Origin: Lytechinus pictus
Taxonomy: Eukaryota
NCBI RefSeq assembly: GCF_037042905.1
Contig: NC_087246.1
Coordinates: forward strand, 15,314,001-15,378,000
Length of the DNA: 64,000 nt
Direction of reading: 5' to 3'
The translations under genes and the position numbers were made by a program. The notes below the pieces were generated by a model, which did not search any database, had not been told where the DNA came from, and saw nothing but the letters and a program-made list of their open reading frames with translations. Below, piece after piece: positions 7,507-57,327 of this stretch (position 1 is its first letter; each line of letters opens with the position of its first letter).

Positions 7507-9606
<2,100 letters not shown>

Positions 9607-10268
9607 TAGTTCCACCTTTACATTTGATTTAGATATTAATGCGAAAAATGATAGGGAGAAACATTAGAAAGATTGAATCATTTTTAGAGAAAAACCTTTC
9701 AAATATCAGAATATATGTCTATTATAATCTAAAATCACTTGTTTTCCAGTAATTTATTTATACATTTGTTCTATCCATTGTACATTCTATTCATTGTGCT
9801 GAATTATGGCAGCGTCCTTCAGGAAATATATCGTCTTGGAGCTAATATAATATATATATGGAGGAAACCTGTCGATAAAGATCACTTGACTGACGACCAT
9901 TGTCTTCAATGGGTGGTCTTTATGCAGAGGTTTTACTGTATAAAGTCAGAAATTCGCCAGCTTTCATAGGGAATTTGAAACTGCTTGGGTGTTAACCCAG
10001 TAATAAATTCTGGTCATCACACTCTGCATAGAGAGGAGCTCAATGACCATCATCTCTTTATCTACTATCATTATACAGTCCCAATTTTCTCCTGCAAGAC
10101 AATGCCCCAAAGCAGAGTGAAGAATTTAAATAGTGGTGTAACTAGTTTAGCTGTGCTTTAGAGATGAAGCTCTAATGAATATATATCCAGTGCTTTTCAC
10201 AAATGTTTGCTTATCAAAGCTGATGAATCTATAACTTATCAAGAATTGTATTGAATTCTGCTCTACAG

Positions 10269-11945: not shown

Positions 11946-11970
11946 GTAGGCATACGTTCAATTTCTATTT

Positions 11971-17148: not shown

Positions 17149-17224
17149 CAAGTGACAAGATATCTTGCAGGGGGGCGTGGATATGCAAATGAAGATAGAA
17201 GATCAGTGAAGGGAAACGCACTTG

Positions 17225-18079: not shown

Positions 18080-19242
18080 TGTCTCACCTGCATAGCATAG
18101 TGAAACTCTGCATAGCAGAGTGAGACTATAATATAGGCGCCGCGTTTCCGACGGCGGCGTCAACACCAAATCTTAACCGAAGGTTAAGTTTTTGAAATGA
18201 CAGCATATAACTTAGAAAGTATATGGAACTAGTTCATGAAACTTGGCCATAAGGTTAATCAAGTATTACTGAACATCCTGCATGAGTTTCAGGTCACATG
18301 ACCAAGGTCAAATGTCATTTAGGGTCAATGAACTTAGACCATGTTGGGGGAATCAACATCAAAATCTTAACCTAAGGTTAAGTTTTTGAAATGTCATCAT
18401 AACTTGGAAAGTTTATGTATCTGATTCATGAAACTTGGACGTAAGAGTAATGAAGTATCACTGAACATCCTGTGTGAGTTTCAGGTCACATGATTAAGGT
18501 CAAAGGTAATTGAAGGTTAATGAACTTTGGCCAAGTTGGGGGTATTTGTTGAATTACCATCGTAACTTTGAAAGTTTATTAGTCTAGTTCATACAACTTG
18601 GACATAAGAGTAATCAAGTATCATCCTGTGCGAATTTCAGGTCAGATGACAAAGGTCAATGAACTTTGTCAATTTTTTTCGGGTATCTTGAATTACCATC
18701 ATTGCTTTGAAAGTTTATGGACCTGATTCATGAAATTCATGACATAAGAGTAATCAAGTATCATTGAACATCCTGTGCCAGTTTCAGTTCACACGACCAA
18801 GGTCAAAGGTCAATGAACTTTGGCCAATTTGGAGGTAATTATAAAGTTTATAGATATAGTTTATAAACTGTGTGGATATAGGGGTAATCAAGTATCATTG
18901 AACATCTCTTGCGAGTTTCAGGTCACATGACCAAATTCAAAGGTCTAAGGTCATTGAACTTTGGCCAATATGGAGGTAATTATTAGATCATGTCATAACT
19001 TTCAAAGTTTATAGATATAGTTTATAAAATGTGGATATAGGGGTAATCAAGTATCACTGACAAGTCTTAGGTCGTATGATCAAGGTCGAATGTCATTTAT
19101 TGTCAATGAACGTAGTATTGTATCATTATAATTTATGAATGGTGTTTTTTGTGAATAATTTTTTATAGTAGTTTTCAAAGTCAGCACTGCTGCTATGTTG
19201 AATCGCGTGATGCAGGTGAGACTGCCAGAGGCGCTCCACTTG
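18080..19242 (+). mobile_element. Full-length Helentron-type non-autonomous element (HINE family A) with internal ~150-170-bp tandem units
   Basis: Subterminal inverted repeats GTCTCACCTGCAT (18081-18093) / ATGCAGGTGAGAC (19210-19222). Short 3' tail ending CTTG; insertion in a T-run with no TSD. Confidence 0.75.
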
Positions 19243-31572: not shown

Positions 31573-33026
31573 ATTGAATACAAAATACAATAAAAATACA
31601 TAGAACCATTTCTGTGAAATTTAGATCTGCAGTAAAATTCAACAACATGAATATAATAAAATCAGGAGAAAGCAACAGTTTATGAATTTTTGTGTCATCA
31701 TCATAATCTTTGTCCTCATCATTGTCATTATATTCTCATCTTCAACATTGATCATTCATTATTGCACACCGCAGTATGCATTTTCTCCATTAATTTTCTA
31801 TTTGTGTCATCTTCCACATTATTCATCATCGCACACTGTGCATGCATTTTGGCTGGATTAAATTCTAAAGTTTTTTATTTGATTTTATTGAAATAGTTGA
31901 TCATCCACTGTCATCATGGTGTGTTTTAAAGTGCAGCCAGACTCTTAAACAAAGGTTCAAGATTTCATGTTTATCTACACCAATGTATATTCCATCTCTT
32001 CCCTCATGCTCACAGCAGGGGAGTGGGAAACCATGAAAATAGCAAATTCAATATTATTGAAGTGAGCATGTTGGAATGTTGTACATATCATTGAATGATT
32101 CAGGATGCTACCTAAAAGTTCATACATGTTTGTACACTGTATATCAATTTGTTTCTATGTACTGCTGTGTACACCACATCCATTTACAAATGAATCCAGT
32201 TGGAAAGTAATGAAAGGTATTTCATAACCAATCTCGCCTTGTTGACATCTATGTCAACAAGGCAAGATGAATTATTTTGCAATCTCGACAAGTCGATTGC
32301 ACTTTAAGTTTAAAGGTTCTGTAACGTTTGACCCTATTAAGAAATTAACTTGCATAACAGTATATTTGTTTAGAATTTTTAATACAACGGTTGATTGCAT
32401 AATGCAATAGAACTGTCAAGTGTTTACATTCTACCCAATGGCTGAGCCACGAACTCCACAATGTGTCATTCTCATGAGCCCCAATGAGATCTATTACATG
32501 TAGCATAAATAATGATAGTAATTAAGTAAATTACCAAAGATAACTGTCCAATTTCCTGACTATTTCCTACCTAATTGTTTGGAAGTTGAAAAGTTTTCAA
32601 GACAGGTGTACAGATCAGTCATTAGATTCGGCAATATTTATCATTCAAATAAAGGAGGGTGAGTCCACAGTCATTCATCCTTATGTCAACTGATTCTAAC
32701 AGGCCTTTAGTGGCTTAGATGCCTGTAATTAAAATAGTTGATAACAAAATAAATACTTGGCGCTAAACTTATATACTTATTGCATACATGTATGATATAT
32801 TTCTTTATTCGCAAATTGCATTATTGCTATGCTGTAGCAAGTGACTAAAGCATACATGTAGTATCATCTCGGATAATTGGTAATAATTTGTTTTATGACT
32901 GGTCTGTGTCTCACAAGAGTTTTTATGTCATATCTTTTATTATTTTATAAATAGACCACTTCTTGTAGAATAGTTAGATCGAGGATATTGATCTACTTTT
33001 CCCTTCTCAGATCATGTATGTGATGA

Positions 33027-33409
33027 ACACCCTGCCTGAGTTTCAGGTGACATGACCAAGGTCAAAGGTCATTTAGGCCATTTTAGGGTCAATGAACTTA
33101 GACCATGTTGGGGGAATCAACATCAAAATCTTAACCTAAGGTTAATTTTTTGAAATGTCATCATAACTTAAAAAATATATGGACCTAGTTCATGAAACTT
33201 GGACATAAGAGTACTGAACATCCTGCCTGAGTTTCAAGTCACATGACCAAGGTCAAAGGTCGTTTAGGGTCAATGAACTTTGGCAAAGTTGGGGGTATCT
33301 GTTGAATTAGCATCATAACTTTGAAAGTTTATAGATCTGATTCTTGAAACTTGGACATAAAAGTAATCAAGTATCACTGAACATCCTGTGCGAGTTTCAG
33401 GTCACATGA
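33027..33409 (+). mobile_element. Internal fragment of HINE family A flanked by a ~65-bp direct duplication
   Basis: Tandem units match 18270-18500; no termini present. Confidence 0.75.
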
Positions 33410-33513
33410 TCTTGTAGAAGAGTTAGATCAAGGATACTGATCTACTTTCCCTTCTCAGATCATGTATGTGATGACCTTAAAATCACTGTTATTACATTTT
33501 ATTGTTTGTCTAG

Positions 33514-36239: not shown

Positions 36240-36880
36240 GTACTTCACCAAATCACAGATTAATGATACATCATTCAGTCAATATCTTACCACATAAGAA
36301 CTGCAATTGCAATTTGATATACTATATGTACTTTCCTGTCAAAAGGATTTATTTCATACAAAGAATGTTTTGTTACCATAATTGTTTTCTGCGTTGGCTC
36401 TGCTTTGCAGATTGCCCTTGTAATATTATTCAATGTACATATACATTATCCACTCCTTGGGGAGAATTATAATGACTTGTCAGGTAGCACTCAAACATGG
36501 ACAATAATACCCATGTGTACATGCAGACTTGCTGTTCCCCATACTACTCAAATTAATCTGTAAAAAAACCACAAGAAAATATAATCTTGAGAATTCTGTA
36601 TTCTTGGGCAATAATCATGATTCATTCCTACCACAATTCTTCTTCAATATCTCTGCTCTTGTGGTATAAGTATAACAACATACCTATTGTTGGAATCTGT
36701 GAACATCATCAAGTAAATACCAAATTTGAAAAAAAATAATTTCTCACTCCCTTGAAACCAGTATTTGCCATGAATAATTGGTCTTTAGAATTGTGAATAG
36801 TTTGTAATTTCTGTGCTTCTTCTGCAAGCTATTGTTGTTTTTACGTACATAATTCTTCTGCATATTTTTCTGATATACAG

Positions 36881-36970
36881 AGCAACAATTGAGAGTCACT
36901 TGGATACACCAATGAATCTACCAGATGTAATCATTACCATAGCCAGTAATGACATCGATTTCATCATTAG
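36881..36970 (+). CDS. BCKDK: BCKDK coding exon 8
   Basis: [29 protein letters not shown](R). Confidence 0.95.
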
Positions 36971-38348
36971 GTGAGTATAAATTGAAATACTGTCCTCATC
37001 TCTGTTCTATGTTGAAGTGTTATTCTCCTCATTACAGTTCATTATTTTGAAGATTAGTGAGACTCCAAGAGTAAAAAAGGCGGAAGATTTGTTGACTTAT
37101 ATTTTATCCATGTACTCTGACACGGTGACAAGCGACTGTCAATAATCCCTGTTTGAGCACAACCAAGATTTCCTCTGTGCTTGACAAAGCAGAAGACGAT
37201 TTCAGCGGTCTTTTTCTGACCATGCGCATTCTGCCATCTTGTTATGACAGAAATATGATTAAATGCAACCTAATGATAACCTCTTGCCCTGTAATGTAAA
37301 CTTAATATTTAATCTTACATTTGATGTCAACCATAGATCAGACATAGCATGTAATAAAAAGTTACAATCTTAAGATGGTTGTATCTCTTTTTAATTTTAG
37401 GGCACTGTAATATATGTACGTTGTGTTTTTGTCACATATTTCATAGGCGCAGAATGAGTTTGATTTAAGAGCATTTGAAAACATTTCCTCCCTTTTAAAA
37501 ATGGAGTGAATTTCAACTTTAATATCACTAAAATAGTTAAGTCTTACTCCATCTGGACCCAAATGGTCTTATTATACCTTTTTTGTCTCCAACCAGTTCA
37601 TGTTATGATAACTATTTGGTCTATTATGCCATTTAATCTGTTTAAAATTGTTTCATATTGCCCAAGTTGAAAACTTTGAAACAGTGCACTGGAATCTGAC
37701 CGGTGGCTGCCAGTCACTGGTGCAATATCATGCAGACCAGTCAATTAATGATAAGGGAATTCATAAGAAATGCAGAGTCAAACTCTTTGAAAATTAGTCA
37801 ATTTATAGAATTAAATTTCATAAAAGTTTCATGTGATATTATCAACTATTAAAGTGGCAGTATGGAAATAAGATTACCATGTAGGACTTCTTAAATTTCC
37901 CTGCTTGAATTTATCGGCCTGTAAAATTATGATACTGTTGCATTTGCAATGCCACATATGCTTACAACTATGATAAGTTACTACATTTCTTCACTTCTCA
38001 TCCTGAGATGACACCTATTTCTAGCGGTCCAGCGGAGTAAGTATGAGTTGCAAATAATTATAGGTGCACTCATCCATAATGCATTACATGCCAATAAGTT
38101 CAAGCAAGAAAATACATGTAGAGGAATCCTGCTTAGTAATCTTAGTTTCATACTTCTACTTGGTCTATTAAAGTTTTGACATTTAATATCATGTGAAAAT
38201 TTTAAATTATAGATGAGGAAATTTCATTTTTAAATGGGTATTTTTTCAGTCTTTGGTGACATTAAATTTTTTAATGTATTTTTTTATGTCACTGGTCCAA
38301 TTATCTGTTTGTTCTTAAAAGAGTGCAAGTGATTAATTCATTTCTATC

Positions 38349-39125: not shown

Positions 39126-40982
39126 GAATATTCCCCAACCCAGTATTAAAGGGAATAGCCCAAGTCCAAATGGTTCAACATAAAATACATGTACACAGTT
39201 GAAACTCAGTGGCTGAAAATCTCACACAGAAGAAAAGTTTAATTGTAAGCGGTGCATATTGCTTGTTTTTGCAGACTACATGAAATATCATACATTTCCC
39301 AAATGATGCATCTATATGTATTTGGAGTGTGCATGTGTGTGGATGTGTGCATGCTTTAAAAACCTAGATTGGTGTTTAAACCTTGAAGATGTTTAGAAAT
39401 AGAATACTATGTGAAGCGCATGGACCAGGAGTACCCGGTACTACCTGCCATAACAGGATTTCATTTGATATGTTTATTTTTGTTTCTCTTCAACCATATT
39501 GTCATTTTGAATGTTGCTTGATCCAATGTTCTTGAGACTGTTAGACGGATGAATGAAAATCCAGTAAGTTCAAAACAACAAAAAACTCACTGCAAGTATA
39601 TGGGATTATCTACTGTATTTGCTTTTTATTGGAGATGTATAACATAGAACATTGATTTAGAGAACCAAAACATGATTAAGTTACTGATGCATATGAAATT
39701 AAACATTTTTAACTTTCCATAGCAAAAGTATTATGTAAAAAGCATGGTACAAAGGATATGCGTAAAAATGAACATGTTTTTATATTTTCATATGAGCAAT
39801 GTACTATAATGACAATAATCAACTTCAACTGGAATAATTCTGTACATGTGCATGCTTATGTACATTTCATATTTTGCATTAATATTTCGTTTGACATGAA
39901 TTCATTAGTAAATGTTGAATTTGATTGACTGTCTAATGGTTTTGACCTCACCTCTCTTAGTCTGTCTCTCTCTAATATTTGGCATCTTTACCTCCAGATT
40001 TACAAATTGAATATTTAAGCTGTTTAGTAAATCTTACATGTTCTAGAAGCATTTTTCATCAACGATACTGCCTTTTGAATATCTATTTCAATAATAATCA
40101 CAGAACTACAGTTTATATAAGTTATAACATAATCATTTCCATATGAAAGCATACATTTAAAATCTTCATTACTGAATTCAATATCCTTCTGTATGAATGC
40201 TACAGGGAAAGGGAACTTTCTTAAAATGAATACAAAGTGCATGCTTGTCTACAGATTATGAATCAAATCACAACATGATTGGATATTTGAGGAATATATG
40301 CAGTTGGACAATCAGAGGTTGATGTCACATGTACTGTATATCACCCACAAATTGAGTTTGAAAGTCACATTAAATTGAGCCTTGTAGAAAATGTTTAGTA
40401 AAGAAATAAAGGATTGTACAAAAGTGGAGTATAATGGAGCAAACTCACAAATTTTGACATTACATTGACTTTCATGTGTTTTGAATGTACACTCTTTTGA
40501 ATTTAAAAAGGATCATTCTCCTAACTATATCTTGAAAAGCCAAAAAATGATTCATGTCAACATGATTACACAAGCAAGTAATATGAGGTTCGAAGATGTA
40601 CCTTAAAGTTTAATTTGGGCCTCAAATTATTTGATTTTCAGAAAAACGTAACAAATTATACAATTTGTTTTCACAGGCATGTGGCCTTTATATAGCAGAT
40701 TCCTTTTTTGCCTAAATCCCCAACCTATCCCTAGTCATGGGTGGAAACCTTTCCTTTCCCTTCCTCCCCCCCCCCCCCCCGAGAAATTTCCTGATTCAAG
40801 AGTTGTCGCAGAAGTACCCCTAGGGAGGTAATGTTGTCACTCCATAGTAAAGTTTTTTGAGCTGTACTCAAAACTGAAAAATGGAAGGCTCAAGACAAAT
40901 AATATGGAGAGTGAAGTTGCCATCAGTCAGAGGTCATGTATTATTGACAATTTCAAATGAATATGTGCTGTTTAATAGTTAA

Positions 40983-43112: not shown

Positions 43113-43224
43113 AACGGGCAGATCCAGGATTTTGCAAAAGGGGGGGGGGGGGACACATTTTCCTGAGAAAAAATTTGACAAGCAAGCAAAAAAAGGCTTT
43201 GCCGCCCCCCTGGATCTGCCAGTG
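43113..43224. mobile_element. Short MITE
   Basis: GGCAGATCCAGG / CCTGGATCTGCC inverted ends. Confidence 0.55.
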
Positions 43225-43665
43225 AATTGAAATTATTTAAAGTTAAAGTAATTTTTTTTTTATATGTCATGATTCATTAAGCTTAGGTTCATATTTTGAC
43301 TTTTCATGTTCCAGTCTGTCATACATGTACATGTCATGTGATACTTTAAGAAACAACCCTTGACATTACACATGTTCAAAGCACATGGAAACATACGATT
43401 CATTTGAGGCCCTACATGTATGTCAGGGATAACATAGGCTAGGAAAATATTTACTGATATTAAATTGTGTTGGGACAGGTTTTTTTTCAAAGAAATCACA
43501 CAATTACTACTAGGCCATGATTATAAACGGAGGTTTCATATTATGCAGTGTCTACAATGAAGTATTAAAAAACATCAGCCAATGAGATTAACTTTCCTGA
43601 TGTTCAAATATAAGGTACACATGCTCTCTTGAATATAGAGTCCACAAAAAAATCCAGGATGCTCT

Positions 43666-45801
43666 TCATTCTTGGGATGTACTGGACAGTCCTCCTTGAG
43701 CTCCATCTACATTGGATGTCCCAAGTTCATGAGCAGGCACCCCTGTACTATCATCTTGCATGGGATAGAACAAAGCTGCAGATGTATCAGCAAGTGTGGC
43801 TTTCTTTGGCGTACGCTTGCGCCTCGACTGCTTGGACTTTGAGTCCTTCTTATCACTCTTGTCACCTTTCTTTTCACTCTTTGGTGACTTTGATTTTACC
43901 TTCTTAAATTTGACCTTGAGAGGCGAGTTGCTGTTGCGATCGGGACTCTTTCTCTTCTTTCCTGTCATCATCTGCGCTGATACCAGCTGCTTGGCAAGAT
44001 TCTTCTTGAACTCCAAGGTGCACATCTTGCGTGTACCAGACAGAGAGCCATGGTTTGCATTCATGTAGGTCTCCTTCATAATGATATATGCGTTGGCCAT
44101 ACATGTGTCAAAGATGAACCAGAATAGATAGTGCCACCATTTGTTGGAGGTGCGAGAGGAAGGATACTCAAGACGAAGCTGGTTGGCGTGTGATACACCA
44201 TGAAGATATTTGTTACAGTTAGACATTGCTTGGGGACAAGGGACTGGCTTTACCCAGCCATCTCGCTGTTTCCTGGTCACATTGTCAGTTACTGTAGCAT
44301 CATCTGCTGTTGACAGCACATGAACAACTCGCTTGTCTTTCCAAGCATATGCGCAGGTATTGCCCTTCTGAACAACTGCGGATTGACCATGTTGTGTAAA
44401 AGACTTGGACCCAAGCTGAGCCTCTGGAAAATCCTTGCGGTCAGCTTTGACAGTTCCCCGTCCCCTGATTCCCAGGTCAAATAGTCTCTCCAGGAGATAA
44501 GGACTACAGAAGAATCCTTTCATGTTAATTATGGCATTAGAATTATGGAGATCCTTGGTGAGATCTAGCACCACTCTTGCTGCTAACCCACCTTCCATTT
44601 TTCCTGCCTGTGACTTGCCAGTATAGAATTGAAAGTCATTCACATAACCATTAGTGGAATCGGCTCTCATCCACACTTTGATCCCTACTGTTGAACCATC
44701 AGCTGATCTCTGCCGCCAACCTAACTTGCCTTTGTAAGTAATTATAGTTTCATCAATACACAAGTTCTGGTGTGGATTGTACGATTCTTTGATAGTGTGT
44801 AGAACTGTGTCCAGAACTGGGCGAATGGCATGAAGTTTATCATGATCTGGAGCAGTCACAGGCGGGTTTGTGGTCATGTCATTAGCACTAAAGTTCCTTG
44901 CTATGTTCTGAAAGCGATTCTTAGGCATGATCTGCGAACAAGCCAGGTTACCAAAGAGCCAATCAGTGGACCAGTACATATCTTGATGAGGGAGGCTAAG
45001 AATGCTCATATAGATGCGAATACCAAGATAAGCTTTCATTTCTGTCAGAGTCAGTGGTTGCCAATGCGCATTGGCTTTATCACCTTGGCTTTGTTCTGCA
45101 AAGCGATTAGTCTCTATCATTAATTGCTCAATGAGTGACTCAGGGAATAGCAAGTTAAAGTAGTCCAGCTCTGGTGTACCAGGTGGAAACAATATCCCCG
45201 GTCCTGGCTGGACAGCATTGAATGGTGGGGGTGGAGTAGCTCTGACTTGATGAGTCCAACCAGATGGCTGATTGGCTTGCTCATTCCTTCCCTTGTGTGC
45301 AGAGGAAGCTGTAGAAGTCGGTGCTCCGACTGTGGAAGCAGGCGGCGGAGGTTGGCCACGAGGAGGCATCTGGAGACCATGAAATGGCATGTGGGAAGCA
45401 CCTTGGGAACCCATGTCAGCAGCCTGCCTTGCTGCTTGTTGGGCAGCCTGCTGCACCAATCCCAGTCCTATGCTCTGGGCAAAAGCTTGCTGGATCATAG
45501 TAGAATTAAACATCTCCCTCCTGCTACCATCTAAGTTTGTGTATGTCTTCTCAATGTCCGATCCACCGCCTTCAGATTGTTCATCAACACTGATGTCATC
45601 GGAGTCTATATCTGAACAGTCAAAAGGGACAGGAGGATGCATCATAGAGCCAGTTCCACCCATGTTGCCTCCCATGTCTGGTCCCATGTTGTGCTGCATG
45701 TTGGGGGGTACATTTTGCATACCACCAGGCATGCCCCCTTGACCCTGGCCTCCCCTGGTAGTATCATAAACACCACCTGCCAACTGCTGAATATTCGCCA
45801 T
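43666..45801 (-). CDS. piggyBac transposase-derived protein (PGBD4-like DDE_Tnp_1_7 fold), ~711 aa, catalytically degenerate, nested antisense in a BCKDK intron
   Basis: Uninterrupted ORF with piggyBac motifs YFNLLF..IETNRFA, W.PLT..EMKAYLG, DKLHAIRP, LCIDET, GIKVW, GTVKADRK, WKDKRVV.VLST, KWWHYLF. Acceptor polypyrimidine-TACAG|G lies immediately before the ATG at 45801. Confidence 0.92.
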   Translation of the reverse strand: MANIQQLAGGVYDTTRGGQGQGGMPGGMQNVPPNMQHNMGPDMGGNMGGTGSMMHPPVPFDCSDIDSDDISVDEQSEGGGSDIEKTYTNLDGSRREMFNSTMIQQAFAQSIGLGLVQQAAQQAARQAADMGSQGASHMPFHGLQMPPRGQPPPPASTVGAPTSTASSAHKGRNEQANQPSGWTHQVRATPPPPFNAVQPGPGILFPPGTPELDYFNLLFPESLIEQLMIETNRFAEQSQGDKANAHWQPLTLTEMKAYLGIRIYMSILSLPHQDMYWSTDWLFGNLACSQIMPKNRFQNIARNFSANDMTTNPPVTAPDHDKLHAIRPVLDTVLHTIKESYNPHQNLCIDETIITYKGKLGWRQRSADGSTVGIKVWMRADSTNGYVNDFQFYTGKSQAGKMEGGLAARVVLDLTKDLHNSNAIINMKGFFCSPYLLERLFDLGIRGRGTVKADRKDFPEAQLGSKSFTQHGQSAVVQKGNTCAYAWKDKRVVHVLSTADDATVTDNVTRKQRDGWVKPVPCPQAMSNCNKYLHGVSHANQLRLEYPSSRTSNKWWHYLFWFIFDTCMANAYIIMKETYMNANHGSLSGTRKMCTLEFKKNLAKQLVSAQMMTGKKRKSPDRNSNSPLKVKFKKVKSKSPKSEKKGDKSDKKDSKSKQSRRKRTPKKATLADTSAALFYPMQDDSTGVPAHELGTSNVDGAQGGLSSTSQE

Positions 45802-47662
45802 CCTGTACATGGAGAAATAAAAAGTATAACTTTTTAAAATTATTTCCATTCATTTTTCCGGGTTTATCTATTTGAATATTATCATTTGCTGAATTCCCCC
45901 GTGAATATTTAAATTTGAAATATCTCTAATTCTTTTATTCTGCAGAACAAAAGTAATGGAATTGAGCCATATAATTTATCTTACTGTGGAAAGTGTTTGT
46001 TTCTTGTCCAGCAGAAGTGCCTCTTATTATTTTGGGGGTCAGGTACATGTAGAGTGGTAGACCTTACCTAACTGAGCAATACCACTTATGACATCAAGGT
46101 GCAATGGTTGAAAAACGCTTTGACAAATTGTGACCTCCCAAAATGGTATTGGAATAATTTCATTGAAATGTCTTGAAAACACCCATATTTTAAAAAATTA
46201 TCCCGGACTGTGGAATATGAATGAATGCACAGACCAGTTTTGAATGTATCCAGGACCGACACAAAGCGTTTTATAGTTGATTTATAGTTGGATCAGTTTT
46301 CAAATTGATTGTAGTAATCATTCTGACATTCTTTAAAAAATAATGATATCTACATGTATTTCCCGCCCAATCTCCCTCCTGGCCTGAATTATTTAGCATT
46401 AAATTGGGTTGGAGTATAAAATTCAAATTTTATTCTTATCATTTTGTTTTGTATAAGGTTTTTTTTTTTTTTTTTAAGGAGTTAAGCGGGAGAAAGTTTG
46501 AACAGAGTAAGAAAAATAGTAGAAATATGTGCATATAAAAGTTGCACTCTTTACCTAGAGCTATGGAAATTTCAAATTAGCCGCATAGGCCAATGGGACT
46601 TTAGGTAGCAACCCCTTAATTTGCTCCAATACACTAATTGACAAATATACATGTACGGTATATATATATATTTTTTTTTACAAACGTTTTTTTTATTGGC
46701 AGAATCATGTTTTACTAAGACTCTAGAGCACTGAAAAATATATCCGTAGATACATGTTTGTTAGACCCAACCTATTCCTACAATGTATGGCCCTGCATCA
46801 TCTGCATGGAAAGCAGGGGGTGCTGTATAAAAAAAGCTGCACATGGCCATAGTGAAGGCAGCATCCCCTGGATGTTGTTGGCCATTTGTATATGCTAATT
46901 TGACCAAAATCAGGGAATAATTTTGCTTTACAAAGTTGAATAGCATTTTTTGTCATATGAGAAAAGCTCTCAACTAGCTAGGTAATGTACATGTACTACA
47001 GTCCTGTAAAAATATGCTTGCTATGTAAGACTTTATGCATAGCAGTACCGGTAGTCTAAAAAAGTGGAGCAAATTGCGATGCGATACCAGGAAAATTATT
47101 CCTTGAAAATCAACTTATTTTTGGAGCAAACCCCCCCCCCCTTTTTTTTTTTTTTTTTACTTGCTTGTCCATTTTTTTCTGAATGATGAATCTGACCAAA
47201 GGCAAAGAAAAGTCAAGAGTAAAGTCCAAACAAAAAAAGCAACTTCATTTTTAATTTTAGAGTGAAAACTTATTTTGGCCAAATTTGGGGCTTTGTCCCA
47301 GGCTAACCCCACCCCCCCCCCCCAACATTCAGTGAAGTCTGTACTACTTTATAAGACAAATGAACGTGATCGCGACCCTGACATGCATGTCCATGGTCCA
47401 TGACCATAGCCATCGATGGCATGAGGAGTCACGTACGCCCAGCCTTCGTCCCAATTGAACGTATGGGACTACATCATAAACTTACAGCATCTCTACACCA
47501 GAATACACGTAGATAATTACATGCACGGAGTCGGAGTCGTGAGGGTTAAACTCCCTGGTATAAAACTGATTTGTCTTTCTTTACTTGTAATCTTTTCATG
47601 ACTTACAAGGCATTGATTACGGGGAAATACTAGGGCTTAAACATATTATTTAATATTCTTAC

Positions 47663-47780
47663 CTGAAGGATATGCGAAGGGTTAAAAAGTGTAATTTGTG
47701 GCATCCACATTCAGTTTCCGCTGAAGTCTATCACCGCCATTGCCTTGGCTCAGCTAGCCCATTATAGCTTAGGCGTACCG
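47663..47780 (-). promoter_or_regulatory. Putative promoter and non-coding leader exon of the piggyBac-derived gene
   Basis: CAG|GTAAGA donor at 47663, YY1-like CCGCCAT (47734-47740), local CpG enrichment. No in-frame ATG after splicing to 45802. Confidence 0.5.
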
Positions 47781-48788
47781 CCGGTACGTACGTATTATGC
47801 ATTATTTGCAGACACGGAAAACACTGCACAAACTTTGTGTATGCATAAACTCAGATCATCGTGTACACACGTACATGTACCAGTACCAGGGACTTTAATC
47901 TTTATTGTTGTCCATTCTGCAGGCCAGGCGGAGCGGTTTTGTAAGTGTGGGGGGGGGGGGGGGGGGGGCTGACCATGCAAAAAATCATAATCAGGGTCAG
48001 TTTTACGTTTTTATACACAGTTTTGGAAAAAAAAGTGCGGGGCCCCCGTAGCCCCCCCCCCCCCGTTTCCGCGGCCCCAGTTTAGGTGTGCACTGTTTAG
48101 GCAAGCAGGGTAGAGCTGATAAGGATTTGGGGGCCAGGCTTTTTTCTGACATTCAGGCATAACATAGGGGGGAAGCGGAGGGGGTCTATTTCTTAGAAAG
48201 ACCCCTATCGCCGCCAGGAAAAACTCCCAAAAGGCATTACTTTGATTAAGATAAAAGGGAACATGGTGTATCCCTTCCCTACCCCTGGGCAAATGAAAAA
48301 AAAGTGTTTTTTGTACATTATATTCAGACTTACTGTAATATTTAACTACATTCGAATACTCCAAAGAATATTTATTTTATGAATTGTTTCAAATAGACCA
48401 GTTTATTATTTTATTAAATGATATGCGTCATTGGCCCGAAAGAAATATTATTCTAGACAAAATGGGGTTAAAATAGGCCTTGAGTGATTCTCCGACAAGA
48501 ATGTAATGCATGCAAAAAACAGGAATGAAAATTTAGTGGCCGCGGTGGGGTGGATCTAGTGACCATAAATCGACTATATAGTGTATGTCCTGCGTTTGGT
48601 GGAGCTATTTATTACATTTATTTATTCATGGACTTGGAATGTTTGTGATTTGAAAAAAAAAAAACATGTTGCGTTTTCAGGTCTACCTGAAATGGTGCAC
48701 CAAGTCAAAAGAACGAACAACTCACTATTGCAAAAAAAAAAAAACGAAAATTTAGTGTATAAAACGAGGATTAAACTCACCAGACAAG

Positions 48789-50321
48789 CAGTGGCGTAAC
48801 AGGCGGGGGGGGGGGCAGGGGGGGCAAGCTGCCCCCCCTGGCGGAGCTCACCGGGAAAATAAAAAAAAACGGGAAAAAGAAAAAAAAAGGGGGGGAAGAA
48901 AGGGAAAGGGAAAGGAAAGAAAAAAGGGGGAAGGGAAAGGAAAAGGGAAAAGAAAACTAAGAAAAAACATAAAAAAGGGAAAACGGAAAGATAACGGGAA
49001 AAGGAAGGAAAAAGAACAAGTGACAAAGAACAATTCGCCCCGATATATAAATACATTAGCATGATTAGTAAGACAGGGAAATAAATTAAAGATGACAAAA
49101 AGGCAAACAAAAGCGGGAAAAAAAGGCAGAATGGAATTAGCCAAAATCTAAATTGGAAAATAAAGAATAGGGACAAGATAACGTACACTACCGGGCTGCC
49201 GAGGATTGAGATAACGAGCGGGAAGAAAAATGGATGGTATATAGCATAATGTCGTATGAAAGTCTATCATAAACTTGCTAAATCTCCAAAGGCTCTGTCC
49301 AAGAGTCAAGACCCCGTGCAGTGGGGGCTCTTCATCTGTAACCTTCAATGGGTTCTATAACGGGCCCCTATATGGACCCTTCCTGCATTAAGCTTTACGT
49401 TGAAGCACTGGCGTACCGGGTGTGGTTCCACAGCCAATGGGAAATAAAAGAAAGGAGGCAGCGAAATGAGATGAATGAAAAAAAATATATGACATGATAT
49501 TTGCTATAATGATGTAAAAATCTATCACATAATTAGAATTTCATTTTAACAGGCCTTTTTTTTCTGGCTCGCTTCGCTCGCTGGCAACTTTTTACAAATT
49601 TTCCCACATTTGCTATGGTGTGCACCTCACAATATTTGGATGATTACGATACACAACTGCATTGAATTTATGTGTTGTGTTAAAGCTATATAAATATACA
49701 CGCAATTTGATTAAAATAAGTGGCCATCTATAAGGTTTAAAATGGCTTTGAAATCAAGAGGTTCCGGGGCTCTGCCCTGGACCCCACCCATAAAGCACTG
49801 TTATATGGATGAGTTTGGACCCTGGCCCCAAAAGTTCTACAACCAAACAAACAAAATGAGGAAAGAAAGGAAAGTGTATTATATTTTTCTGAATATCACG
49901 TTTAAAATCTATCTTCATGTTAGATTCTCATGAAAATGTGATTTTTTTTTATCTCGCTCGCTTCGCTCGCTCGGGACCTATATTAAGCTACTCCTTGCCA
50001 AAAGCGCCATACTCGGCCCCCTCAAGCATATAGAGCTTCGCCCTGATGCTGACAATCATAAGTTCATAACAAAAATCCTGTTCACCGTGGCGTACAAAAA
50101 AAGAAAGAAAAAAGGAAAGAGAGGAGGGTGAATATGATATCATCTTTTTAACATTATGTCAAAATCTATCACAAAATTTGATTTTTTTCGCTTATTTGCC
50201 CGATACGCCATATCGCCCCCTCAAAATTGTTGCCTTATGACGCCATTGCCTGTTCAATGATATGACCGGGAAATTTTTGGCTCTTGCCCCCCCCTGGCCA
50301 CCGACCCCTGTTACGCCGCTG
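48789..50321. mobile_element. Non-autonomous hAT-like element
   Basis: TIRs CAG(T/C)GGCGTAACAGG with a perfect 8-bp TSD CAGACAAG (48781-48788, 50322-50329); internal A/G-rich tract. Confidence 0.85.
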
Positions 50322-50690
50322 CAGACAAGGAAATTTCAAGTAACACAGGTGCTGATCGATAAATGATCACTATACTTGCGTTCTTTCCATTTCTTTGAAT
50401 AAGATTTTCAACATCTGGGATACCATTCAAGGAAGTTAAACATACTACCGAAACTTTTTTTTTCCCTTTTTTTTTCTAAGTGAATAAGATGACTATAATC
50501 GGGTTTAAATTAATCTTTTGTTTAGGCTTGCATATACCAGAGATGCACTTGAGATTTCATGACCATGCAATCAAATCCAACTTTGGATAGCTGCAAATAA
50601 TTATGTCCAGCAAACTGGTGGGGTCGATCAGCGGCCACAGCTCTTTTGTTGACGGCGGGGGAAATACAAAAGGAGGAAGAATAATTGTAA

Positions 50691-50691
<1 letters not shown>

Positions 50692-50733
<42 letters not shown>

Positions 50734-50830
50734 CAGTTCTTGTATAGCGCATATCACGATTATGAATAATGTCTCTATGCGCTTGCAAAGGACTTGGATA
50801 TTATTACCCCAGCTGTAGCTTGGCAGCCGT
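50692..50830 (-). mobile_element. SINE/LINE 3' tail with (AAT)n microsatellite
   Basis: About 13 AAT units followed by TATAGCGC...ATTATTACCCCAGCT, related to the 28 kb SINE tails. Confidence 0.55.
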
Positions 50831-52937
50831 AATTACTAAGATTAAGATTACTAATAATAATAGTAATGATAATAATAATAAGAAGGAGAGGAGGAGGAAA
50901 TGTAGAGAAGAGAAATAAAAGAGAAAGAGGAGAAAAAGAAAATTAAAAGGAGAAATAAAATGGAAAAAAATACATATTCAGGGGAAGCGATGGCTAATGC
51001 GAGCATGAGAGCAATTTACGGGTGACAGGTCAATAATTATTTATCGATATCAAAATTTCGCTCGCACTACACACCCTGCTCAGCTCAAATGATTTTTTGA
51101 TCTTGCAAAATGCAAATATTACTTTATTCCCTCATTTAAACATTCCATTAAATTCCAGTTTTTAGATCTAAATATTACTCAATTTCTGTTGGTGTTTCGC
51201 GCTCGCATTCTTTGTTTTGTGAGATTGGTATTATGTAAAATAATGATCCTTTAAAAAAATGACCCTTTATAAAAGGCTTGCGCTTCGCTCGCATTTTTGT
51301 TAGATGAATCTACGCACCGTGATTGAAAATTTGCTTTTAATGCCCCGTTTTCAGGTTTGAAGAGTTAATAAGCAATTTAAACCAAAAAGTTTAATGAATA
51401 AAATTGTTTCTTCTTATCCAGATATGCGAATGTAGAAAACGGATAATATTCATCCCGATGACAAAATCTCAAGTCTTCCAGGTGATCGATGATGACGTTA
51501 GAGCGTTCCTTCCATTTCTCTGAATAAGATTTCCAGTATACATGGTATAGCCTCATTCATGGAAGTTATGCCTTATCATCAACATTACGAAACTGAAAAG
51601 TTATTTTCTCTCAGTGTTTTATATGTTCAGTTCGGAACTTTCAGTTCAGGACATGATGATTATAATCCATGCACTCGCATTATTTGTATAAGATGCGAAC
51701 CCTGTTTGTGAATTTGTACAAGTAGTCCTAATAATTATGTTACTTAAAAAAAAAAAAAAAATCAGTTTCTACTTCGTACTTGCAATATTTATTTATTGTG
51801 AAACCAAAGGTGTTTATATAGAGCGTCCATTTTTTCAGGAGCACCAATGTGTAAATAATCAGCAGAATCCTAGCATATACGGTTTTGTGACCATCATGAT
51901 ACTTCGAAAACCGAGAACGTTCGCAGAAATCATAAAAGGAATTATGTGTTATCAGACATACTACCGAAAATGAAAAAAGGGGTTCCTTTTGTTTTGAACT
52001 AGATTAATAATCCATGCATTCGCATTATTTGTTTAGTGTGATACGGTTCATGAATTCGGGTTAAATGATCCCTTTCCATGTTTTTTCAGTTAATTGTCTA
52101 ATTTGAATGCTCACGGTGATATACAGAAGGGGCTCACAGAATTTTCCTTTTGATTAAGTCAGGATATGAATATATTTGAGGTTGCGCTTCATGCTCCAAT
52201 TATTTGTTTATTGGCTGTTTCTCTAGCTGGTTACGTGTCTTGTTCATGAATTCCAACTAAGTCCTTAAAATGTCACCTTTTCAGGGAAGAATAACAAAAG
52301 AATGATTGAATTGAATTGAATTGAATGTATTTATTGTCCTGTGTAGTAAATTCATTTCACATCGGATTTACAAAATTACAAATACATATGCACATAGACA
52401 GAATGAAATAGACTTACAATACCGTGGGATTACATACACAAACAAAATGCCGTATACGTTATTTCAAATATAATAGAAAAAAGTACAATTGCAGATGTAT
52501 AAATTGATTAATTGTTCAAATATTAATTGGTTTGTGATTCCATCTCCAGCCCGAATACGGGGGGGGGGGGTGGAACGAGTATTGCGAGACTTTAAATTAA
52601 AGGTGAGTATTAAAAGGGGCGGGGTTCACAGTAAGCTAAGTGCAATTCCCCATTCTATCTGACAACTGTACTATTAAACACATGTTGAGAATTGAAATGA
52701 CTGCCTAAAACGTACTCTGTTAGTACGGGAGACACAGAGGCGAACACCAGACCTATTGAAGTTGTAATATCAGTGTAGAGGGTGAGATGGATCTTTTAAG
52801 ATAGCCTCAACTTTAGCCAGTAATCTCTCGTTGTACAGAGTTTCAATTGGGGGTAATTCAAGACCGATTATTTTCTGGGCAATTTTCCGTGGGCGTGTTG
52901 TTCGATTTAGTGATGCGCTCGTATATGATTACGTTTA

Positions 52938-54297
52938 CACTCTGAATTCCAAGGATTTACGTAGAATTGATCCAGATCGGCTGTGGACAGTGACCGGCCG
53001 AATTTTGAATTTATTTTAAATCTTAAGGATTAACTTATAAATCTCTAAAGACTTTAATTCAAATCTTTTAGATTTATATTCAAATCAACAAGGTTTAAAT
53101 CTAAATCTATATTCGGCTGGTCACTATTCACAGCCGATCTGGATTTAAACCCCTGAAAAAAAAATTGGAAATCTGTGTTTTTTTCATTAATTTCTCCCAA
53201 CTCCCAATTTTACACAATGCGTGTTTTACATCATTCAAAAATCATATAATTTTCTTTAAAATGATACCATGCTTGTTATGATCATGCCATCACGAAAAGA
53301 GCAAGCTTCAAAAGTGTTGGATGAGGTCTGAATTGAAAAGCTGCAAAACAAGCAAAAAAAAGTTTGGAAATCTGAGTTTGGCCATTAATTTCTCCCAACT
53401 CCCAATTTGACACAATGCATATCTTCCATCATTCAAAAGATCATTTAATTTTCTTTAAAATGATACCATGCTTGTTATGATAATGCCATCACGAAAAGAG
53501 CAGGATTCAAAAGTGTTGGATGAGGTCTGAATTGAAAAGCTGCAAAACGAGCAGAAACAGTCATGAAGGGTCAATACAGAACATGATTCTTTTGTCTGTG
53601 TCAATAGACATGATAGAGATGAAAATCCATTCAAATCAAGTCCCTGCTTCTGTAGTGATGGTTCTGTGAGATAACATGGTTTGAGTCGTGGTTTGAAATA
53701 CCCCATGCATGTTTGTTTGTTTGTAGTATGTGTTTGCTTGGGCAGAGGTGTGTTTGACTCCATGTTAATGTTGATGTTAAGGTGCATGAAAACAATTAAA
53801 AGAAACCGCTGAGAAACTCATCACCACTGAAAAAAGAACAGTGACTTTCAATAATGTGTCATTTTTCAACTTTTGAATTTTGACCTTGCCCCACATTTCA
53901 AGGCATGCATTGCACCTCCATGTGAACCATAATCATATCATGTAGGGTATCATTTTAAAGAGAATTAAATGCTCTATTCATTGATATTAATTATACATTG
54001 ATATTTACTAAAATCGAGGAGGAATCATCGATCAAAGTAAAAACAAACCGCTGAGAAACTCATCACCACGGAAAAAGAACAGTGACTCTCAATATTGTGT
54101 CATTTTGCGACTTTCAATATTGTGTCATTTTGCAACTTTTGAATTTTGACCTTACCCCACATTTCAAGGCACTATATACACCTCCATGTGAACCATAATC
54201 ATATCATGTAGGGTATCATTTTAAAGAGAATTAAATGCTCTATTCATTTCCAAACTTTTTTGGAGGAGTTTATTTTAAATCCTTGGAATTTAGAGTG
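52938..54297. mobile_element. Non-autonomous DNA transposon with CAC termini (EnSpm/CMC-like); contains two internal tandem duplications
   Basis: TIRs CACTCT(G/A)AATTCCAAGGATTTA with TA flanks. Duplications at ~53165/53365 and ~53803/54045. Confidence 0.7.
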
Positions 54298-54789
54298 TAG
54301 TGAAATAAGACTTATTTCACTTCGAGAAGCCGATCATTAATTTTTTAAGGAAAATTTTCCGCCCTCCATGTTTGACAGTCCCAGCCTCCGCCTCTGGAGA
54401 ATACTGTTAGCTGTATACCACAGTCCTCTATACTTATAAGATGAAACATTCAACAAATCTCCCTTCTATCTGTATGGTGCGAATGTACCGACCCTCTTTG
54501 TAACTTTTTCTTTTTTTCCCCCGTTAAAGTTGCATTTTAGTTTTCATTATTCAGTAGAATGAATCTTAGCCACCCCTCCGAAACCAAAAAACACTTTGTT
54601 TTATGATATAATGCGGTTGTGGAGCAATCAAGCTGAAAGTGTTAATGCTGGAATAGAAACTAAACTTGAAAATTGAATGAATTTCAAGTAATGAAATCTA
54701 TACGTCATTCTAGGTCATCAAAGCTAAGTTATTTGATGTACAACATCAAAAACCTTAATCAGAATGAAGATTTTTTTTCATGTCATTTT

Positions 54790-56105
54790 TGTCTCGCCTG
54801 GGCGCCGCTTTTCCAACGGCGGCGGCGGCGTCGTCAACATTGAAATCTTAACTAAGGTTGATTTTTGTCTCGCCTGCGTAGAAGAGCGGGACTATAGTCG
54901 CCGCTATTCTGACGGTGGCCGCGGAGGCGGCGGCGTCGTCAACATTGGTTGAGTTTTTGAACTGTCAGTAGAAAGTATATAGACCTAGTTCATGAAACTT
55001 TGAAATAAGGGTAATCAATCACAGTGACTGACCACCTTGCATGAGTTTCATGTTACATGGCCAAGGTCAGAGATCATTTAGGATCAATGAACTTTGACCA
55101 TGTTGGGGATATCAACATTGAAATCTTAACCAAGGTTAATTTTTTTGTCTCGCCTGTATAGCAGAGCGAGACTATAGGCGCCGCTTTTCCGACGGCGGCG
55201 GCGGTGTCAACATCAAATCATAAACGGAGGTTAAGTTTTTGAAATGTCATCATAACTGAGAAAGTATATGGGCCTAGTTCATGAAACTTGGACATAAGGG
55301 TAATTAAGTATTACTGAACACCCTGCCTGAGTTTCAGATCACATGACCAAGGTCAAAGGTCATTTAGGGTCAATGAACTAGGACCATGTTGGGGAATCAA
55401 CATCAAAATCGTAACCGAAGGTTAAGTTTTTGAAATGCCATCATAACTTAGAAAGTATATGGGCCTCGTTCATGAAACTTTGACATAAGGGTAATCAATT
55501 ATAACTGAACACAATGTCTGAGTTTCAGATCACATGACCAAGGTCAAATGTCATTTAGGGTCAATGAACTTAGATTATGTTAGGGGAATCAAAATCTTAA
55601 GCAAGGTTAAGTTTTTTTAAATATCCTAACTCTGAAATTTAGGGTCATTGAACTTTGGCCATGTTTGTGGTATTTGTTGATTTCCATCATAACTTTGACA
55701 GTTTATGGATCTGGTTCATGAAACTTGGACATAAGAGTAATCAAGTATCACTGAACATCCTTTGTGAGTTTCAGGTCCCATGACCTAGGTCAATGAACTT
55801 TGGCCGTGTTGGGGGTATTTGTTGAATTGCCATCATAACTTTGAAAGTTTACTACTAGTTCATAAAATGTGGATATAAGGGTAATCAAGTATCACTGATT
55901 GTCTTGCACAAGTCTTTGGTCACATGATCAAGGTCAAATGTCATTTAGGGTCAGTGAACATAGTAATTTATCATCATATATGGTGTTTTTTGTAAATGAT
56001 TATTCGTAAATTCGATTATTCGTAAATATATAGTCGTTTTCAAAGTCAGCACTGCTGCTATATTAAATCGCGTAATGCATGCGAGACTGCCAGAGGCTCC
56101 TCTTG
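54790..56105 (+). mobile_element. HINE family A cluster with three 5' ends and one 3' end
   Basis: T-run|GTCTCGCCTG at ~54791, ~54867 and ~55147; single 3' end GCGAGACTGCCAGAGGCTCCTCTTG. Confidence 0.75.
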
Positions 56106-56174
56106 TTTTGAAATATGCTAACTTTTAATGCAAATGGATTTACATGATTGTTATTATCATATCAGTGATGTTTT

Positions 56175-56395
56175 TGTCTCACCCATCGGAGGTGAAGGCA
56201 AGACTAAAGAGATCCAAATGTCGTCCGTCTGTCACAAACATTACGACAGATAACTTTGCAACCGTAAGTCACTTTCAACCAAACTTGGGTTGTAGATGCA
56301 TTTATGTTATGGTGCAATCGGAGGTCACATGGTAAGGTCATTTCAGGTCAAACGTTAAAGGTCACGTGTAAGATTCTCTTGTGACACATAACTCT
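56175..56395 (+). mobile_element. 5' fragment of a further HINE-like family
   Basis: T-run|GTCTCACC start, GTCCGTCTGTC microrepeat and AGGTCA-rich unit. Confidence 0.45.
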
Positions 56396-56574
56396 GATAT
56401 CCACTCTCCACATAACTCTGATATCCACTCTCTCCAGAGAGTGGCTTTAGCTTTGGTTTGCTTTTTTTAAACCAAATCTTATTGAGTATTGGTCTACAGT
56501 ACTGGCATTGGTAGAAAACTAGAAATCAAACAATTATTTATATCACCCAATTACATTTTTATCTCCCATCCCAG

Positions 56575-56736
56575 GATATCAGATCGAGGAGGAGGTATCC
56601 CTCATTCCATGTTGAAGAAGGTGTTTCAGTATCACTTCACTACAGCTAATGATGATGAGAGTGTGAGTGATAATGGTGGAGCATTCGGTACTTTGATGGA
56701 AGCCGTTAATCAGACTACAGCTGGGCCTCTCTGCGG
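56575..56736 (+). CDS. BCKDK: BCKDK coding exon 9
   Basis: ISDRGGGI (G1 box) ... YHFTTA ... GPLCG. Confidence 0.95.
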
Positions 56737-57327
56737 GTGAGTGCTGCATATATTTGCAAACATACCAATCAAGAACCTATCAAATCTTATATATCATTGA
56801 TTTAAAAGCCACATCATACTGCAAAGAAATATATATAAAAATCAATCTTTTACAGGATTTTAGTTTGAGCAATATTTGGCTTGCCACAGATTCTGAAACA
56901 AATTTTTACTAGAGCTCAAATGGCTTTAAGATGTTATCATGCAAAGGCTAAAAAAATCATTTTTATTATGTGCTCAACTTGGCTCAATTTTGGGGGAAAT
57001 GTGGAACCTGCATTAAAACTTTCACTTGATTTTTTTTTTACTCAACAAGGATGAATCATTATTTTGTTACTGTTTTAATGTTGGCACAAAAAGCTCTGCA
57101 TGTTTTTTCAATATGGATAAACTCGAAGAGATATTTTGTCAAAGGGAGAAAAAAAGTGGCGTTGTTTTCGTTGGAATTAAATATGTAGTTTCATATTCTT
57201 TCATATTGATGTCATATGTTTTATGTACTAAGTGAGTTATGTTAAGTAATGCATGAATTTTCAAAAGGTCTAAAAGGCAGAACTTGTTTGATTTTTTTGT
57301 TTAAAGCCTGAAGAATCTTTTTCAGCT

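Follow-up and report, generated by a model that had tools for sequence, protein, structure and literature searches.

Domesticated transposases, such as RAG1, PGBD5, and PiggyMac, are a recurring source of new nuclear proteins, and the role of those that are catalytically dead is largely unknown. Here, we describe a piggyBac-derived gene of the sea urchin Lytechinus pictus, which is located on the reverse strand at positions 43666–45801 of a 64,000-nucleotide stretch of contig NC_087246.1 (RefSeq assembly GCF_037042905.1, forward-strand positions 15,314,001 to 15,378,000); this whole stretch is called the window below, and coordinates are given in its numbering. An earlier note, made from the letters of the window alone, had pointed to the gene as an intact but catalytically dead transposase that the host may have kept for a non-catalytic role.

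Domesticated and active piggyBac transposases

For the piggyBac transposase of Trichoplusia ni, whose catalytic DDD triad is formed by D268, D346, and D447, a cryo-electron microscopy study has shown that R275, Y283, and K290 of the omega loop hold the DNA hairpin, that R372, K375, and R376 of the insertion domain contact the target DNA, and that the cysteine-rich domain recognizes internal repeats of the transposon end (PMC7351741). Among the domesticated members of the family, PGBD5 bears 5–7 introns at conserved positions within the transposase domain (PMC3902484; PMC5381638), and its triad has been tabulated as “_ _ _ D/N” (PMC5381638). PGBD5 has been described as absent from echinoderms, with only “distant intronless piggyBac ORFs” (open reading frames) in Strongylocentrotus purpuratus (PMC3902484; PMC5381638), and Bouallegue et al. 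saw nothing similar to the PGBD5 flanks in that species (PMC5381638). Human PGBD5 has been reported to promote DNA rearrangement via D168, D194, and D386 (PMC4625184). In Paramecium, the account cited here places PgmL1–5 among six domesticated PiggyBac transposases that act jointly in DNA elimination (PMC6143343).

An intact coding sequence of the piggyBac family

The coding sequence of the urchin gene comprises 711 codons and a TGA stop in a single coding exon (43666–45801, reverse strand). The reading frame remains open further upstream, giving 727 codons at 43666–45849, and the start at 45849 was considered and rejected, with its 16 extra codons lying upstream of a conserved splice acceptor and showing no conservation. 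Because these first 16 codons are intronic, the true start is the ATG at 45801 (MANIQQ...). At 45805/45806, there is a sharp onset of homology to S. purpuratus and Diadema, and the MANIQQ start is common to S. purpuratus, Diadema, and an orthologue from one ENA assembly (P0003). An identical protein of 711 residues is already held by NCBI/UniRef (P0220).

The protein is a member of the piggyBac transposase superfamily, and its match to the family is not due to chance. The Pfam domain DDE_Tnp_1_7 (PF13843, piggyBac transposase) covers residues 213–572 (44086–45165, reverse strand) with E = 2.6e-72 and 244.5 bits against a cut-off of 22.4, spanning profile positions 4–349 out of 349. When solved structures were searched with phmmer, the piggyBat transposase (9c0f) was matched with an E-value of 9e-29 and T. 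ni piggyBac (6x67) with 2.5e-19. No second piggyBac-like copy was found in the 64,000 nucleotides of the window.

Catalytic positions lost and DNA-binding parts retained

The phmmer alignments to 9c0f and 6x67 are free of gaps at the catalytic motifs, so that each position can be read directly. The first catalytic Asp is kept as D350 in the motif LCIDET (44752–44754, reverse strand); it is aligned with T. ni D268 and is invariant across the echinoid orthologues. The second is replaced by K428 (44518–44520, reverse strand), which stands in the sequence NMKGFF instead of xDNxF, aligned with the D346 motif, and the spacing of 78 residues between the two positions equals that in T. ni. The third and fourth conserved Asp have given way to S537 (codon 44191–44193) and N540 (codon 44182–44184) within GVSHANQ instead of GVDxxDQ (44182–44193, reverse strand; aligned with the D447/D450 motif). 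The DDD triad is not intact in any orthologue, each of them reading D/K/S followed by N, and no Asp or Glu adjoins the second or third catalytic position in the motif contexts compared.

These replacements are peculiar to the echinoid proteins. Among 86 non-urchin relatives, 97% have D in the second column, where every urchin orthologue has K; the third and fourth columns hold D in 95% and 88% of the same relatives, respectively, and S and N in every urchin orthologue. Across 193 collected proteins of the family, 138 read D-D-D-D at the four columns, and D-K-S-N is confined to the echinoid orthologues. The positions and the 78-residue spacing that the earlier note had assigned to D350, K428, S537, and N540 proved exact; the uninterrupted 711-codon frame and the piggyBac assignment on which it built were likewise borne out, the latter by the full-profile Pfam match, and the intact Asp at shifted positions that it had allowed for is not there in the gap-free alignments.

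A broader view is given by 90 columns that are at least 80% conserved in the 86 non-urchin relatives, compared with four urchin proteins: 63 of them are identical in all four, and the 27 changed ones fall mostly in the triad region, in the loop after the first Asp, and in the cysteine-rich domain. In the triad region, the changes are D428K, D537S, and D540N, together with Y529C. The loop after the first Asp shows R to K, Y to R, P to S, K to D, P to G, and K to T; it corresponds to a remodelled omega loop at residues 355–375 (44677–44739, reverse strand), where T. ni R275, Y283, and K290 have become K357, R365, and T371. All seven family-conserved Cys/His columns that supply zinc ligands are replaced in the urchin proteins, which have 0–1 Cys in the last 80 residues, as compared with 5–9 in nearly all relatives. 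The basic patch of the insertion domain, GTVKADRKDFPE (44422–44457, reverse strand), is kept, with K452, R455, and K456 in place of T. ni R372, K375, and R376. As judged from these alignments, the parts lost are those needed for transposition chemistry and for end recognition; the core fold is kept, as are the basic residues that belong to the target-DNA channel.

The predicted structure is in line with this picture. In an AlphaFold2 model built from a 90-sequence alignment, the predicted local distance difference test score exceeds 90 over most of residues 181–620, with predicted disorder at residues 1–98 and 628–711. A Foldseek search with this model returned 6x67 (E 1.5e-25, template modelling score (TMt) 0.74) and 9c0f (TMt 0.73, root-mean-square deviation 2.9 Å), and piggyBac and piggyBat stood far above Tn5. 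In the predicted model, the RNase H-like core fold of piggyBac is retained.

Both termini differ from those of the transposon relatives. The urchin proteins are longer at the N-terminus by about 100 residues, in which an acidic Ser-rich stretch is followed by an echinoid-specific conserved module (residues 57–131 together, 45409–45633, reverse strand; 99% identity to S. purpuratus and 79% to Diadema). The module itself, residues 84–131, shows 99% identity to S. purpuratus; it is missing from the transposon relatives and was found in the echinoid orthologues only; neither a Pfam match nor an outside homologue of it was found. Helices are predicted here with low confidence at residues 99–110 and 114–128. 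At the other end, the cysteine-rich domain is replaced by a basic tail rich in Lys, Arg, and Ser (43798–43962, reverse strand), with an isoelectric point of 10 and predicted disorder. The tail carries the motifs GKKRKSP, PLKVKFKK, and SRRKRTPKK, partly conserved to Diadema, which by their composition are putative nuclear localization signals.

Orthologues, synteny, and selection

Orthologues were found in Lytechinus variegatus, S. purpuratus, Diadema setosum, D. antillarum, and the ENA assembly mentioned above, and all of them read DKSN. Identity to the window protein is 99% for L. variegatus, 88% overall and 95% in the domain for S. purpuratus, and 76% overall and 90% in the domain for D. setosum. 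There is one gene copy in the window and in each fetched locus (S. purpuratus, D. setosum, and L. variegatus), and the protein is placed on one contig per species, with two in D. antillarum. No orthologue was found in the annotated protein sets of sea stars, sea cucumbers, and crinoids, where the best crinoid match has 34% identity and reads DDDD.

The gene is located antisense within an intron of about 19.6 kb (between 36984 and 56562) of a PDK/BCKDK-like kinase gene. The same antisense placement in the same kinase-gene intron is seen in L. variegatus, S. purpuratus, and D. setosum, with a single coding exon in each. The host gene product matches BCDHK_Adom3 and HATPase_c at 3/3 fetched loci, and the host exons of the window match the same Pfam families, so by its domains the host gene is a PDK/BCKDK-like mitochondrial kinase.

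Ratios of non-synonymous to synonymous substitution (dN/dS), estimated by the Nei–Gojobori method, are 0.076–0.078 for the whole gene and 0.037–0.089 for the transposase domain, with an overall range of 0.037–0.10. In the comparison with Diadema, synonymous sites are saturated (proportion of synonymous differences, pS, 0.84), with a domain dN of 0.05. Fisher tests of pS against the non-synonymous proportion, pN, gave p from 6e-14 to 8e-138. The gene block 45830–43344 is 96.35% identical to L. variegatus, as against 81–88% in the surrounding intron. The coding sequence is under strong purifying selection.

Conserved splice signals surround the 5′ end of the gene. The window, L. variegatus, S. 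purpuratus, and Diadema each have a polypyrimidine tract followed by AG 1 nt ahead of the ATG; the first three of them also share a donor, CAG|GTAAGA (47663|47662 in the window). The only block upstream of the ATG that is conserved in S. purpuratus (45802–56562 was searched) lies right at this donor, at 47656–47724, with 85.5% identity over 69 nt in collinear order. Together, the conserved block, donor, and acceptor indicate that the first exon is non-coding and that an intron of 1.86 kb lies in the 5′ untranslated region (5′ UTR). The putative first exon extends over 47663–47741 (reverse strand), with its 3′ end set by the donor and its 5′ end uncertain, and the intron over 45803–47662 (reverse strand; GT at 47662–47661, AG at 45804–45803), its splicing being inferred from the conserved signals.

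Two gene models depart from the window sequence. In the L. variegatus assembly GCA_018143015.1 (L003:9966–10075), there is an extra G in a G-run about 15 codons past MANIQQ, and the NCBI model starts at a downstream out-of-frame ATG (MILPGG...) and has 700 residues; the extra G is probably a homopolymer assembly error, since the other species share a conserved N-terminus. For L. pictus, the RefSeq model XP_054749218.1 (P0221) is identical to the window protein at 482/483 positions over residues 1–483, the difference being V158A; past residue 483 (about 44350), it continues with 17 unrelated residues and ends at 500 residues, which could reflect a frameshift in the assembly version used there or an alternative isoform.

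Search for transposon ends

No credible terminal inverted repeat (TIR) was found at the TTAA pairs that flank the reading frame (38 × 21 pairs, about 3.7 kb on either side), and a generic inverted-repeat scan gave only low-complexity or unrelated pairs. One pair, 43136–43194 and 47131–47180, was considered as a TIR: it includes 29 nt at 90% identity and a 15-nt G-run/C-run at 100%, about 4 kb apart. The pair was rejected because it falls outside the block conserved in S. purpuratus, and it looks like two inverted copies of a dispersed repeat.

A side observation was made in the putative first exon, whose sense strand reads TTAACCC at 47679–47685 (reverse strand), similar to the start of a piggyBac left end (TTAA followed by CCC...). 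At this site, S. purpuratus has GTTACCCC, and there is no matching right end. The likeness is probably due to chance, and it may alternatively be a relic of an ancestral left end or of a promoter.

Origin from a piggyBac-like element

Against 1.84 billion representatives, an exhaustive search with HMMER yielded 14,411 matches, the best 150 representatives of which were examined. Full-length coverage was reached by the S. purpuratus cluster only (1464 bits); the next match scored 393 bits, with 44% identity over the domain only. A maximum-likelihood tree of 53 rows (LG+C20+F+G4 with posterior mean site frequencies, PMSF; PGBD5 is not among the rows) was complemented by a quick tree of 105 rows, and the two agree. 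The DKSN clade has support 100/100, and the branching inside it follows the species tree. It is nested, with support 100/98, in a clade of 24 rows, whose other members include proteins of Diadema (P0172), Dreissena, and Patella and read DDDD for the most part; such nesting among elements with an intact DDD points to a lineage-specific domestication. The stem of the DKSN clade measures 0.88 and its tips at most 0.09, and this long stem followed by near-stasis suggests that the sequence may have changed rapidly at or after capture and then come under strong constraint.

The nearest invertebrate elements are 44–47% identical to the urchin protein (46% for the Diadema family), and the relatives keep the C-terminal Cys/His domain. 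The three families checked are multicopy: there are two loci in D. setosum and at least four in D. antillarum, some of them truncated; in Pecten, 14 cluster members lie on at least eight contigs, and Dreissena has at least four, so that the number of members per genome ranges from 2 to 14. The intact DDD, the zinc domain, and the multiple copies of these relatives indicate that the gene derives from an ordinary piggyBac-like element, one belonging to a family that still exists in marine invertebrates. No TTAA/TIR pair was found around the Diadema sister element P0172 (locus L004), and its transposon nature rests on copy number, intact DDD, and the zinc domain.

In a neighbouring clade, the lungfish Protopterus annectens has two proteins, P0030 and P0031, one reading DDDG and labelled “PGBD5-like” and the other reading DDSN (873 residues). 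These may be further candidates for domestication or decaying copies.

Taken together, the gene is almost certainly a domesticated host gene, and the overall course of events was probably a single capture of a piggyBac-like transposase before the divergence of Diadema from the camarodonts (Lytechinus and Strongylocentrotus). This split dates to about 200–250 million years ago. The idea of a host gene, put forward in the earlier note, has gained support from synteny, dN/dS, nesting in the tree, and the lack of TIRs and of shifted Asp. The note had proposed to look for an orthologue at the same position, and one is found in three other species, single-copy, syntenic, and antisense in the kinase intron; dN/dS is far from the value near 1 that would have spoken against a host gene, and there is no sign of many near-identical TIR-flanked copies or of a lack of orthologues. 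Its observation that the gene has no TIR pair and no TTAA-flanked element around it holds in the TTAA-anchored scan. Its suggestion of an undescribed lineage-specific domestication stands in part: no description of an echinoid-specific piggyBac domestication was found in the literature searched, and the gene as such is already annotated in NCBI/UniRef as PGBD5 or PGBD5-like.

Possible role of the protein

It is rather likely that the protein has a non-catalytic role in binding DNA or chromatin or as a scaffold, as suggested by its sequence and predicted fold. According to this model, the protein would be nuclear and would not cut DNA by the canonical mechanism; it would act through the retained dimerization and DNA-binding core and the DNA channel, as a chromatin or DNA binder or an assembly scaffold, and the helices newly gained at the N-terminus would serve to bring in a conserved cellular partner. 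Since urchin embryos can be injected, knocked down, and imaged, the function is directly testable.

One alternative is that the dead transposase represses related active elements, blocking them via inactive heterodimers or by occupying DNA. The predicted retention of the dimerization and DNA-binding core would allow this, and a related DDD-intact multicopy family does exist in Diadema. However, Lytechinus and Diadema share 90% identity in the domain at a dN/dS of about 0.04, a degree of conservation more in keeping with a fixed partner in the cell than with an arms race; in the protein sets of Lytechinus and S. purpuratus, no member of the sister family was found, yet both have kept the gene; and the protein is only 46% identical to the Diadema family and has lost the zinc domain that recognizes transposon ends. 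Repression of this kind is, therefore, unlikely.

It has also to be considered whether the protein still cuts or rearranges DNA via non-canonical acidic residues, a claim made for human PGBD5. A lost canonical triad is no strict proof that all activity has gone because PGBD5 is reported to be active via other Asp residues, needing D168, D194, and D386 instead of the canonical triad (PMC4625184). The urchin protein retains D350/E351, the whole RNase H-like fold (as predicted), and the basic residues of the insertion domain that contact target DNA. Against this, every orthologue has Lys at the second and Ser at the third metal-ligand position, with no acidic neighbour at either in the motif contexts compared; the hairpin-handling residues of the omega loop have been replaced, the zinc domain for end binding has been lost, and no TIR-bearing substrate family is known. 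Non-canonical cutting thus appears quite improbable, and the non-catalytic role remains the preferred one.

Relation to PGBD5

The NCBI label of the orthologues, “piggyBac transposable element-derived protein 5(-like)”, raises the question of whether they are echinoderm orthologues of chordate PGBD5. In that case, a transposase would have been domesticated once, in the deuterostome ancestor; the chordate gene would later have gained introns, and the triad would have decayed differently in the two lines. Besides the names given to the S. purpuratus, Lytechinus, and Diadema proteins, this reading can draw on the fact that both genes are without the cysteine-rich domain and three of the four conserved Asp and have an N-terminal extension. 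However, the urchin clade is nested (100/98) among DDDD elements of molluscs and echinoids that are 44–47% identical to it; the triad losses differ, the urchins keeping the first Asp and losing the second to the fourth, as against “_ _ _ D/N” in PGBD5; and the urchin coding sequence, reading D K S N, is free of introns in the window, S. purpuratus, and Diadema, unlike PGBD5 with its 5–7 conserved introns. Two published searches saw neither PGBD5 nor similarity to its flanks in S. purpuratus (PMC3902484; PMC5381638), and no orthologue of the urchin gene was found in the annotated protein sets of sea stars, sea cucumbers, and crinoids.

The label itself is loosely applied and, for that reason, is no guide to orthology: it is also borne by the DDDG lungfish protein, and close relatives of the urchin clade are variously called PGBD3 or PGBD4-like. 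In two word-index searches and among the looked-up proteins of the best 150 HMMER representatives, no chordate PGBD5 was seen, and an Asp is missing at all of the first three positions in two rows of these 150, a scorpion protein and one unnamed protein. Orthology with PGBD5 is, hence, very unlikely, and the echinoid gene probably arose independently of it. The automatic label “PGBD5(-like)” given to the urchin proteins probably implies an orthology that is unsupported here and denied by the literature.

The notion that the gene is merely an immobilized, not-yet-decayed transposon copy or a chance open frame, for which its intronless coding sequence, as in transposon genes, might speak, has a negligible chance of being right, given the same position in species with saturated synonymous sites, dN/dS of about 0.08, conserved splice signals, single-copy status, and the lack of TIRs.

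Several points nevertheless weigh against the reading of a single echinoid capture put to non-catalytic use. Retention of D350 and the neighbouring Glu means that some activity may be compatible with the sequence. The absence of the gene from other echinoderm classes rests on annotated protein sets and not on genome searches. PGBD5 is not among the rows of the tree, and its exclusion is based on the position of the urchin clade within DDDD elements, on the proteins looked up among the best 150 representatives, and on the literature. The first exon was not found in Diadema in two motif searches, so that its support is limited to camarodont urchins. It is improbable, all in all, that the echinoid gene and PGBD5 stem from one deuterostome capture or, alternatively, that non-canonical catalysis has been retained. 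If either were true, it would overturn the published view of PGBD5-type genes as a chordate innovation and would provide a tractable embryo system (L. pictus and S. purpuratus) for the debate on what a triad-less piggyBac protein does.

Other features of the locus

The host-gene exons that border the intron are located at 36846–36984 (forward strand), with an open frame and collinear with a conserved S. purpuratus block, and at 56562–56742 (forward strand), which encodes part of the HATPase_c domain (Pfam match) and is conserved at 89.5% in S. purpuratus and 75.7% in Diadema. In the window, the forward-strand host exons collinear with S. purpuratus occupy about 33.5–37.0 kb and 56.6–57.7 kb.

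Downstream of the stop codon, a conserved sequence at 43344–43665 (reverse strand), within the block 96.35% identical to L. variegatus, is probably the 3′ UTR; homology to S. purpuratus reaches 43574, and no clear AATAAA signal was seen. Just upstream of the first-exon block, on the reverse strand, there is a 15-nt palindrome CGTACCG-G-CGGTACG (47774–47788) followed by TATAAT (47761–47766), which, to judge from sequence, may be a promoter element of the gene.

Further along the host intron, downstream of the gene, two blocks are conserved and collinear with S. purpuratus, 39598–39887 (70% over 308 nt) and 40208–40252 (84% over 45 nt); they have no open frame and may be conserved non-coding elements or an old repeat. 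Elsewhere in the window, a long open exon at 7642–9609 (forward strand) encodes a protein kinase domain (Pfam Pkinase, E 6.5e-53) and is followed by a 380-codon open frame at 10807–11949 (forward strand) that has no Pfam match; the two presumably belong to a neighbour gene upstream of the PDK-like gene. The window also contains a T/C-rich tandem unit of 54 nt in 15.5 copies and repeat arrays with periods of about 144–286 nt (tandem arrays at 17222–18079, 18160–19111, 33011–33410, and 54834–55959). The arrays with periods of about 144–286 nt form a dispersed satellite-like family, which is seen at three sites of the window and, in the L. variegatus locus, upstream. In addition, there is a perfect tandem duplication at 3576–3756 (91-nt unit, 2.0 copies, 100% identity).

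Comparison with known piggyBac systems

Active piggyBac-like elements, i.e., T. ni piggyBac (6x67), piggyBat (9c0f), and the Diadema and bivalve “PGBD4-like” proteins (P0172, P0010, and P0014), belong to the same Pfam family as the urchin gene, and the first two share its predicted core fold with TMt of 0.73–0.74. In contrast to such elements, the urchin gene is devoid of the DDD triad, the zinc-finger domain, and TIR/TTAA flanks, and it is single-copy and syntenic.

With PGBD1–4, KOBUTA, and the teleost NeoPGBD, the urchin gene has in common that it is single-copy and syntenic, shows low Ka/Ks, bears no transposon ends, and is confined to one animal lineage; unlike it, most of these genes still possess the cysteine-rich domain along with all, or the greater part, of the triad (PMC5381638), both of which the urchin gene has lost. 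The urchin gene predates the Diadema–camarodont split and is probably older than the primate-restricted PGBD3 and PGBD4 (PMC5381638). PGBD5 is similar in being an ancient domesticated piggyBac under purifying selection that has lost the cysteine-rich domain and three Asp and gained an N-terminal extension. By the published descriptions, it differs in having lost the first to the third Asp and in its 5–7 introns, while the urchin gene has lost the second to the fourth, has no introns in the coding sequence, and resides in an intron of a PDK-like gene.

The PgmL proteins of Paramecium are without a complete catalytic triad and are partners of an active enzyme. By analogy, these PiggyMac-like partners may offer the closest functional precedent for a dead piggyBac scaffold. 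PgmL1–5 differ from the urchin protein in that they act beside a catalytically active paralogue in programmed DNA elimination, and they are not close to it in sequence. To our knowledge, sea urchins have neither an active domesticated paralogue nor programmed elimination.

Overall, the echinoid gene is a lineage-restricted domesticated piggyBac, the product of a known kind of event, and is notable for its age, its constraint, and its clean pattern of loss and retention: the metal ligands, the hairpin loop, and the end-binding zinc domain are lost, the core and the DNA channel are kept, and an N-terminal module has been added. Among piggyBac domestications, it seems to rank with the older and more strongly constrained ones.

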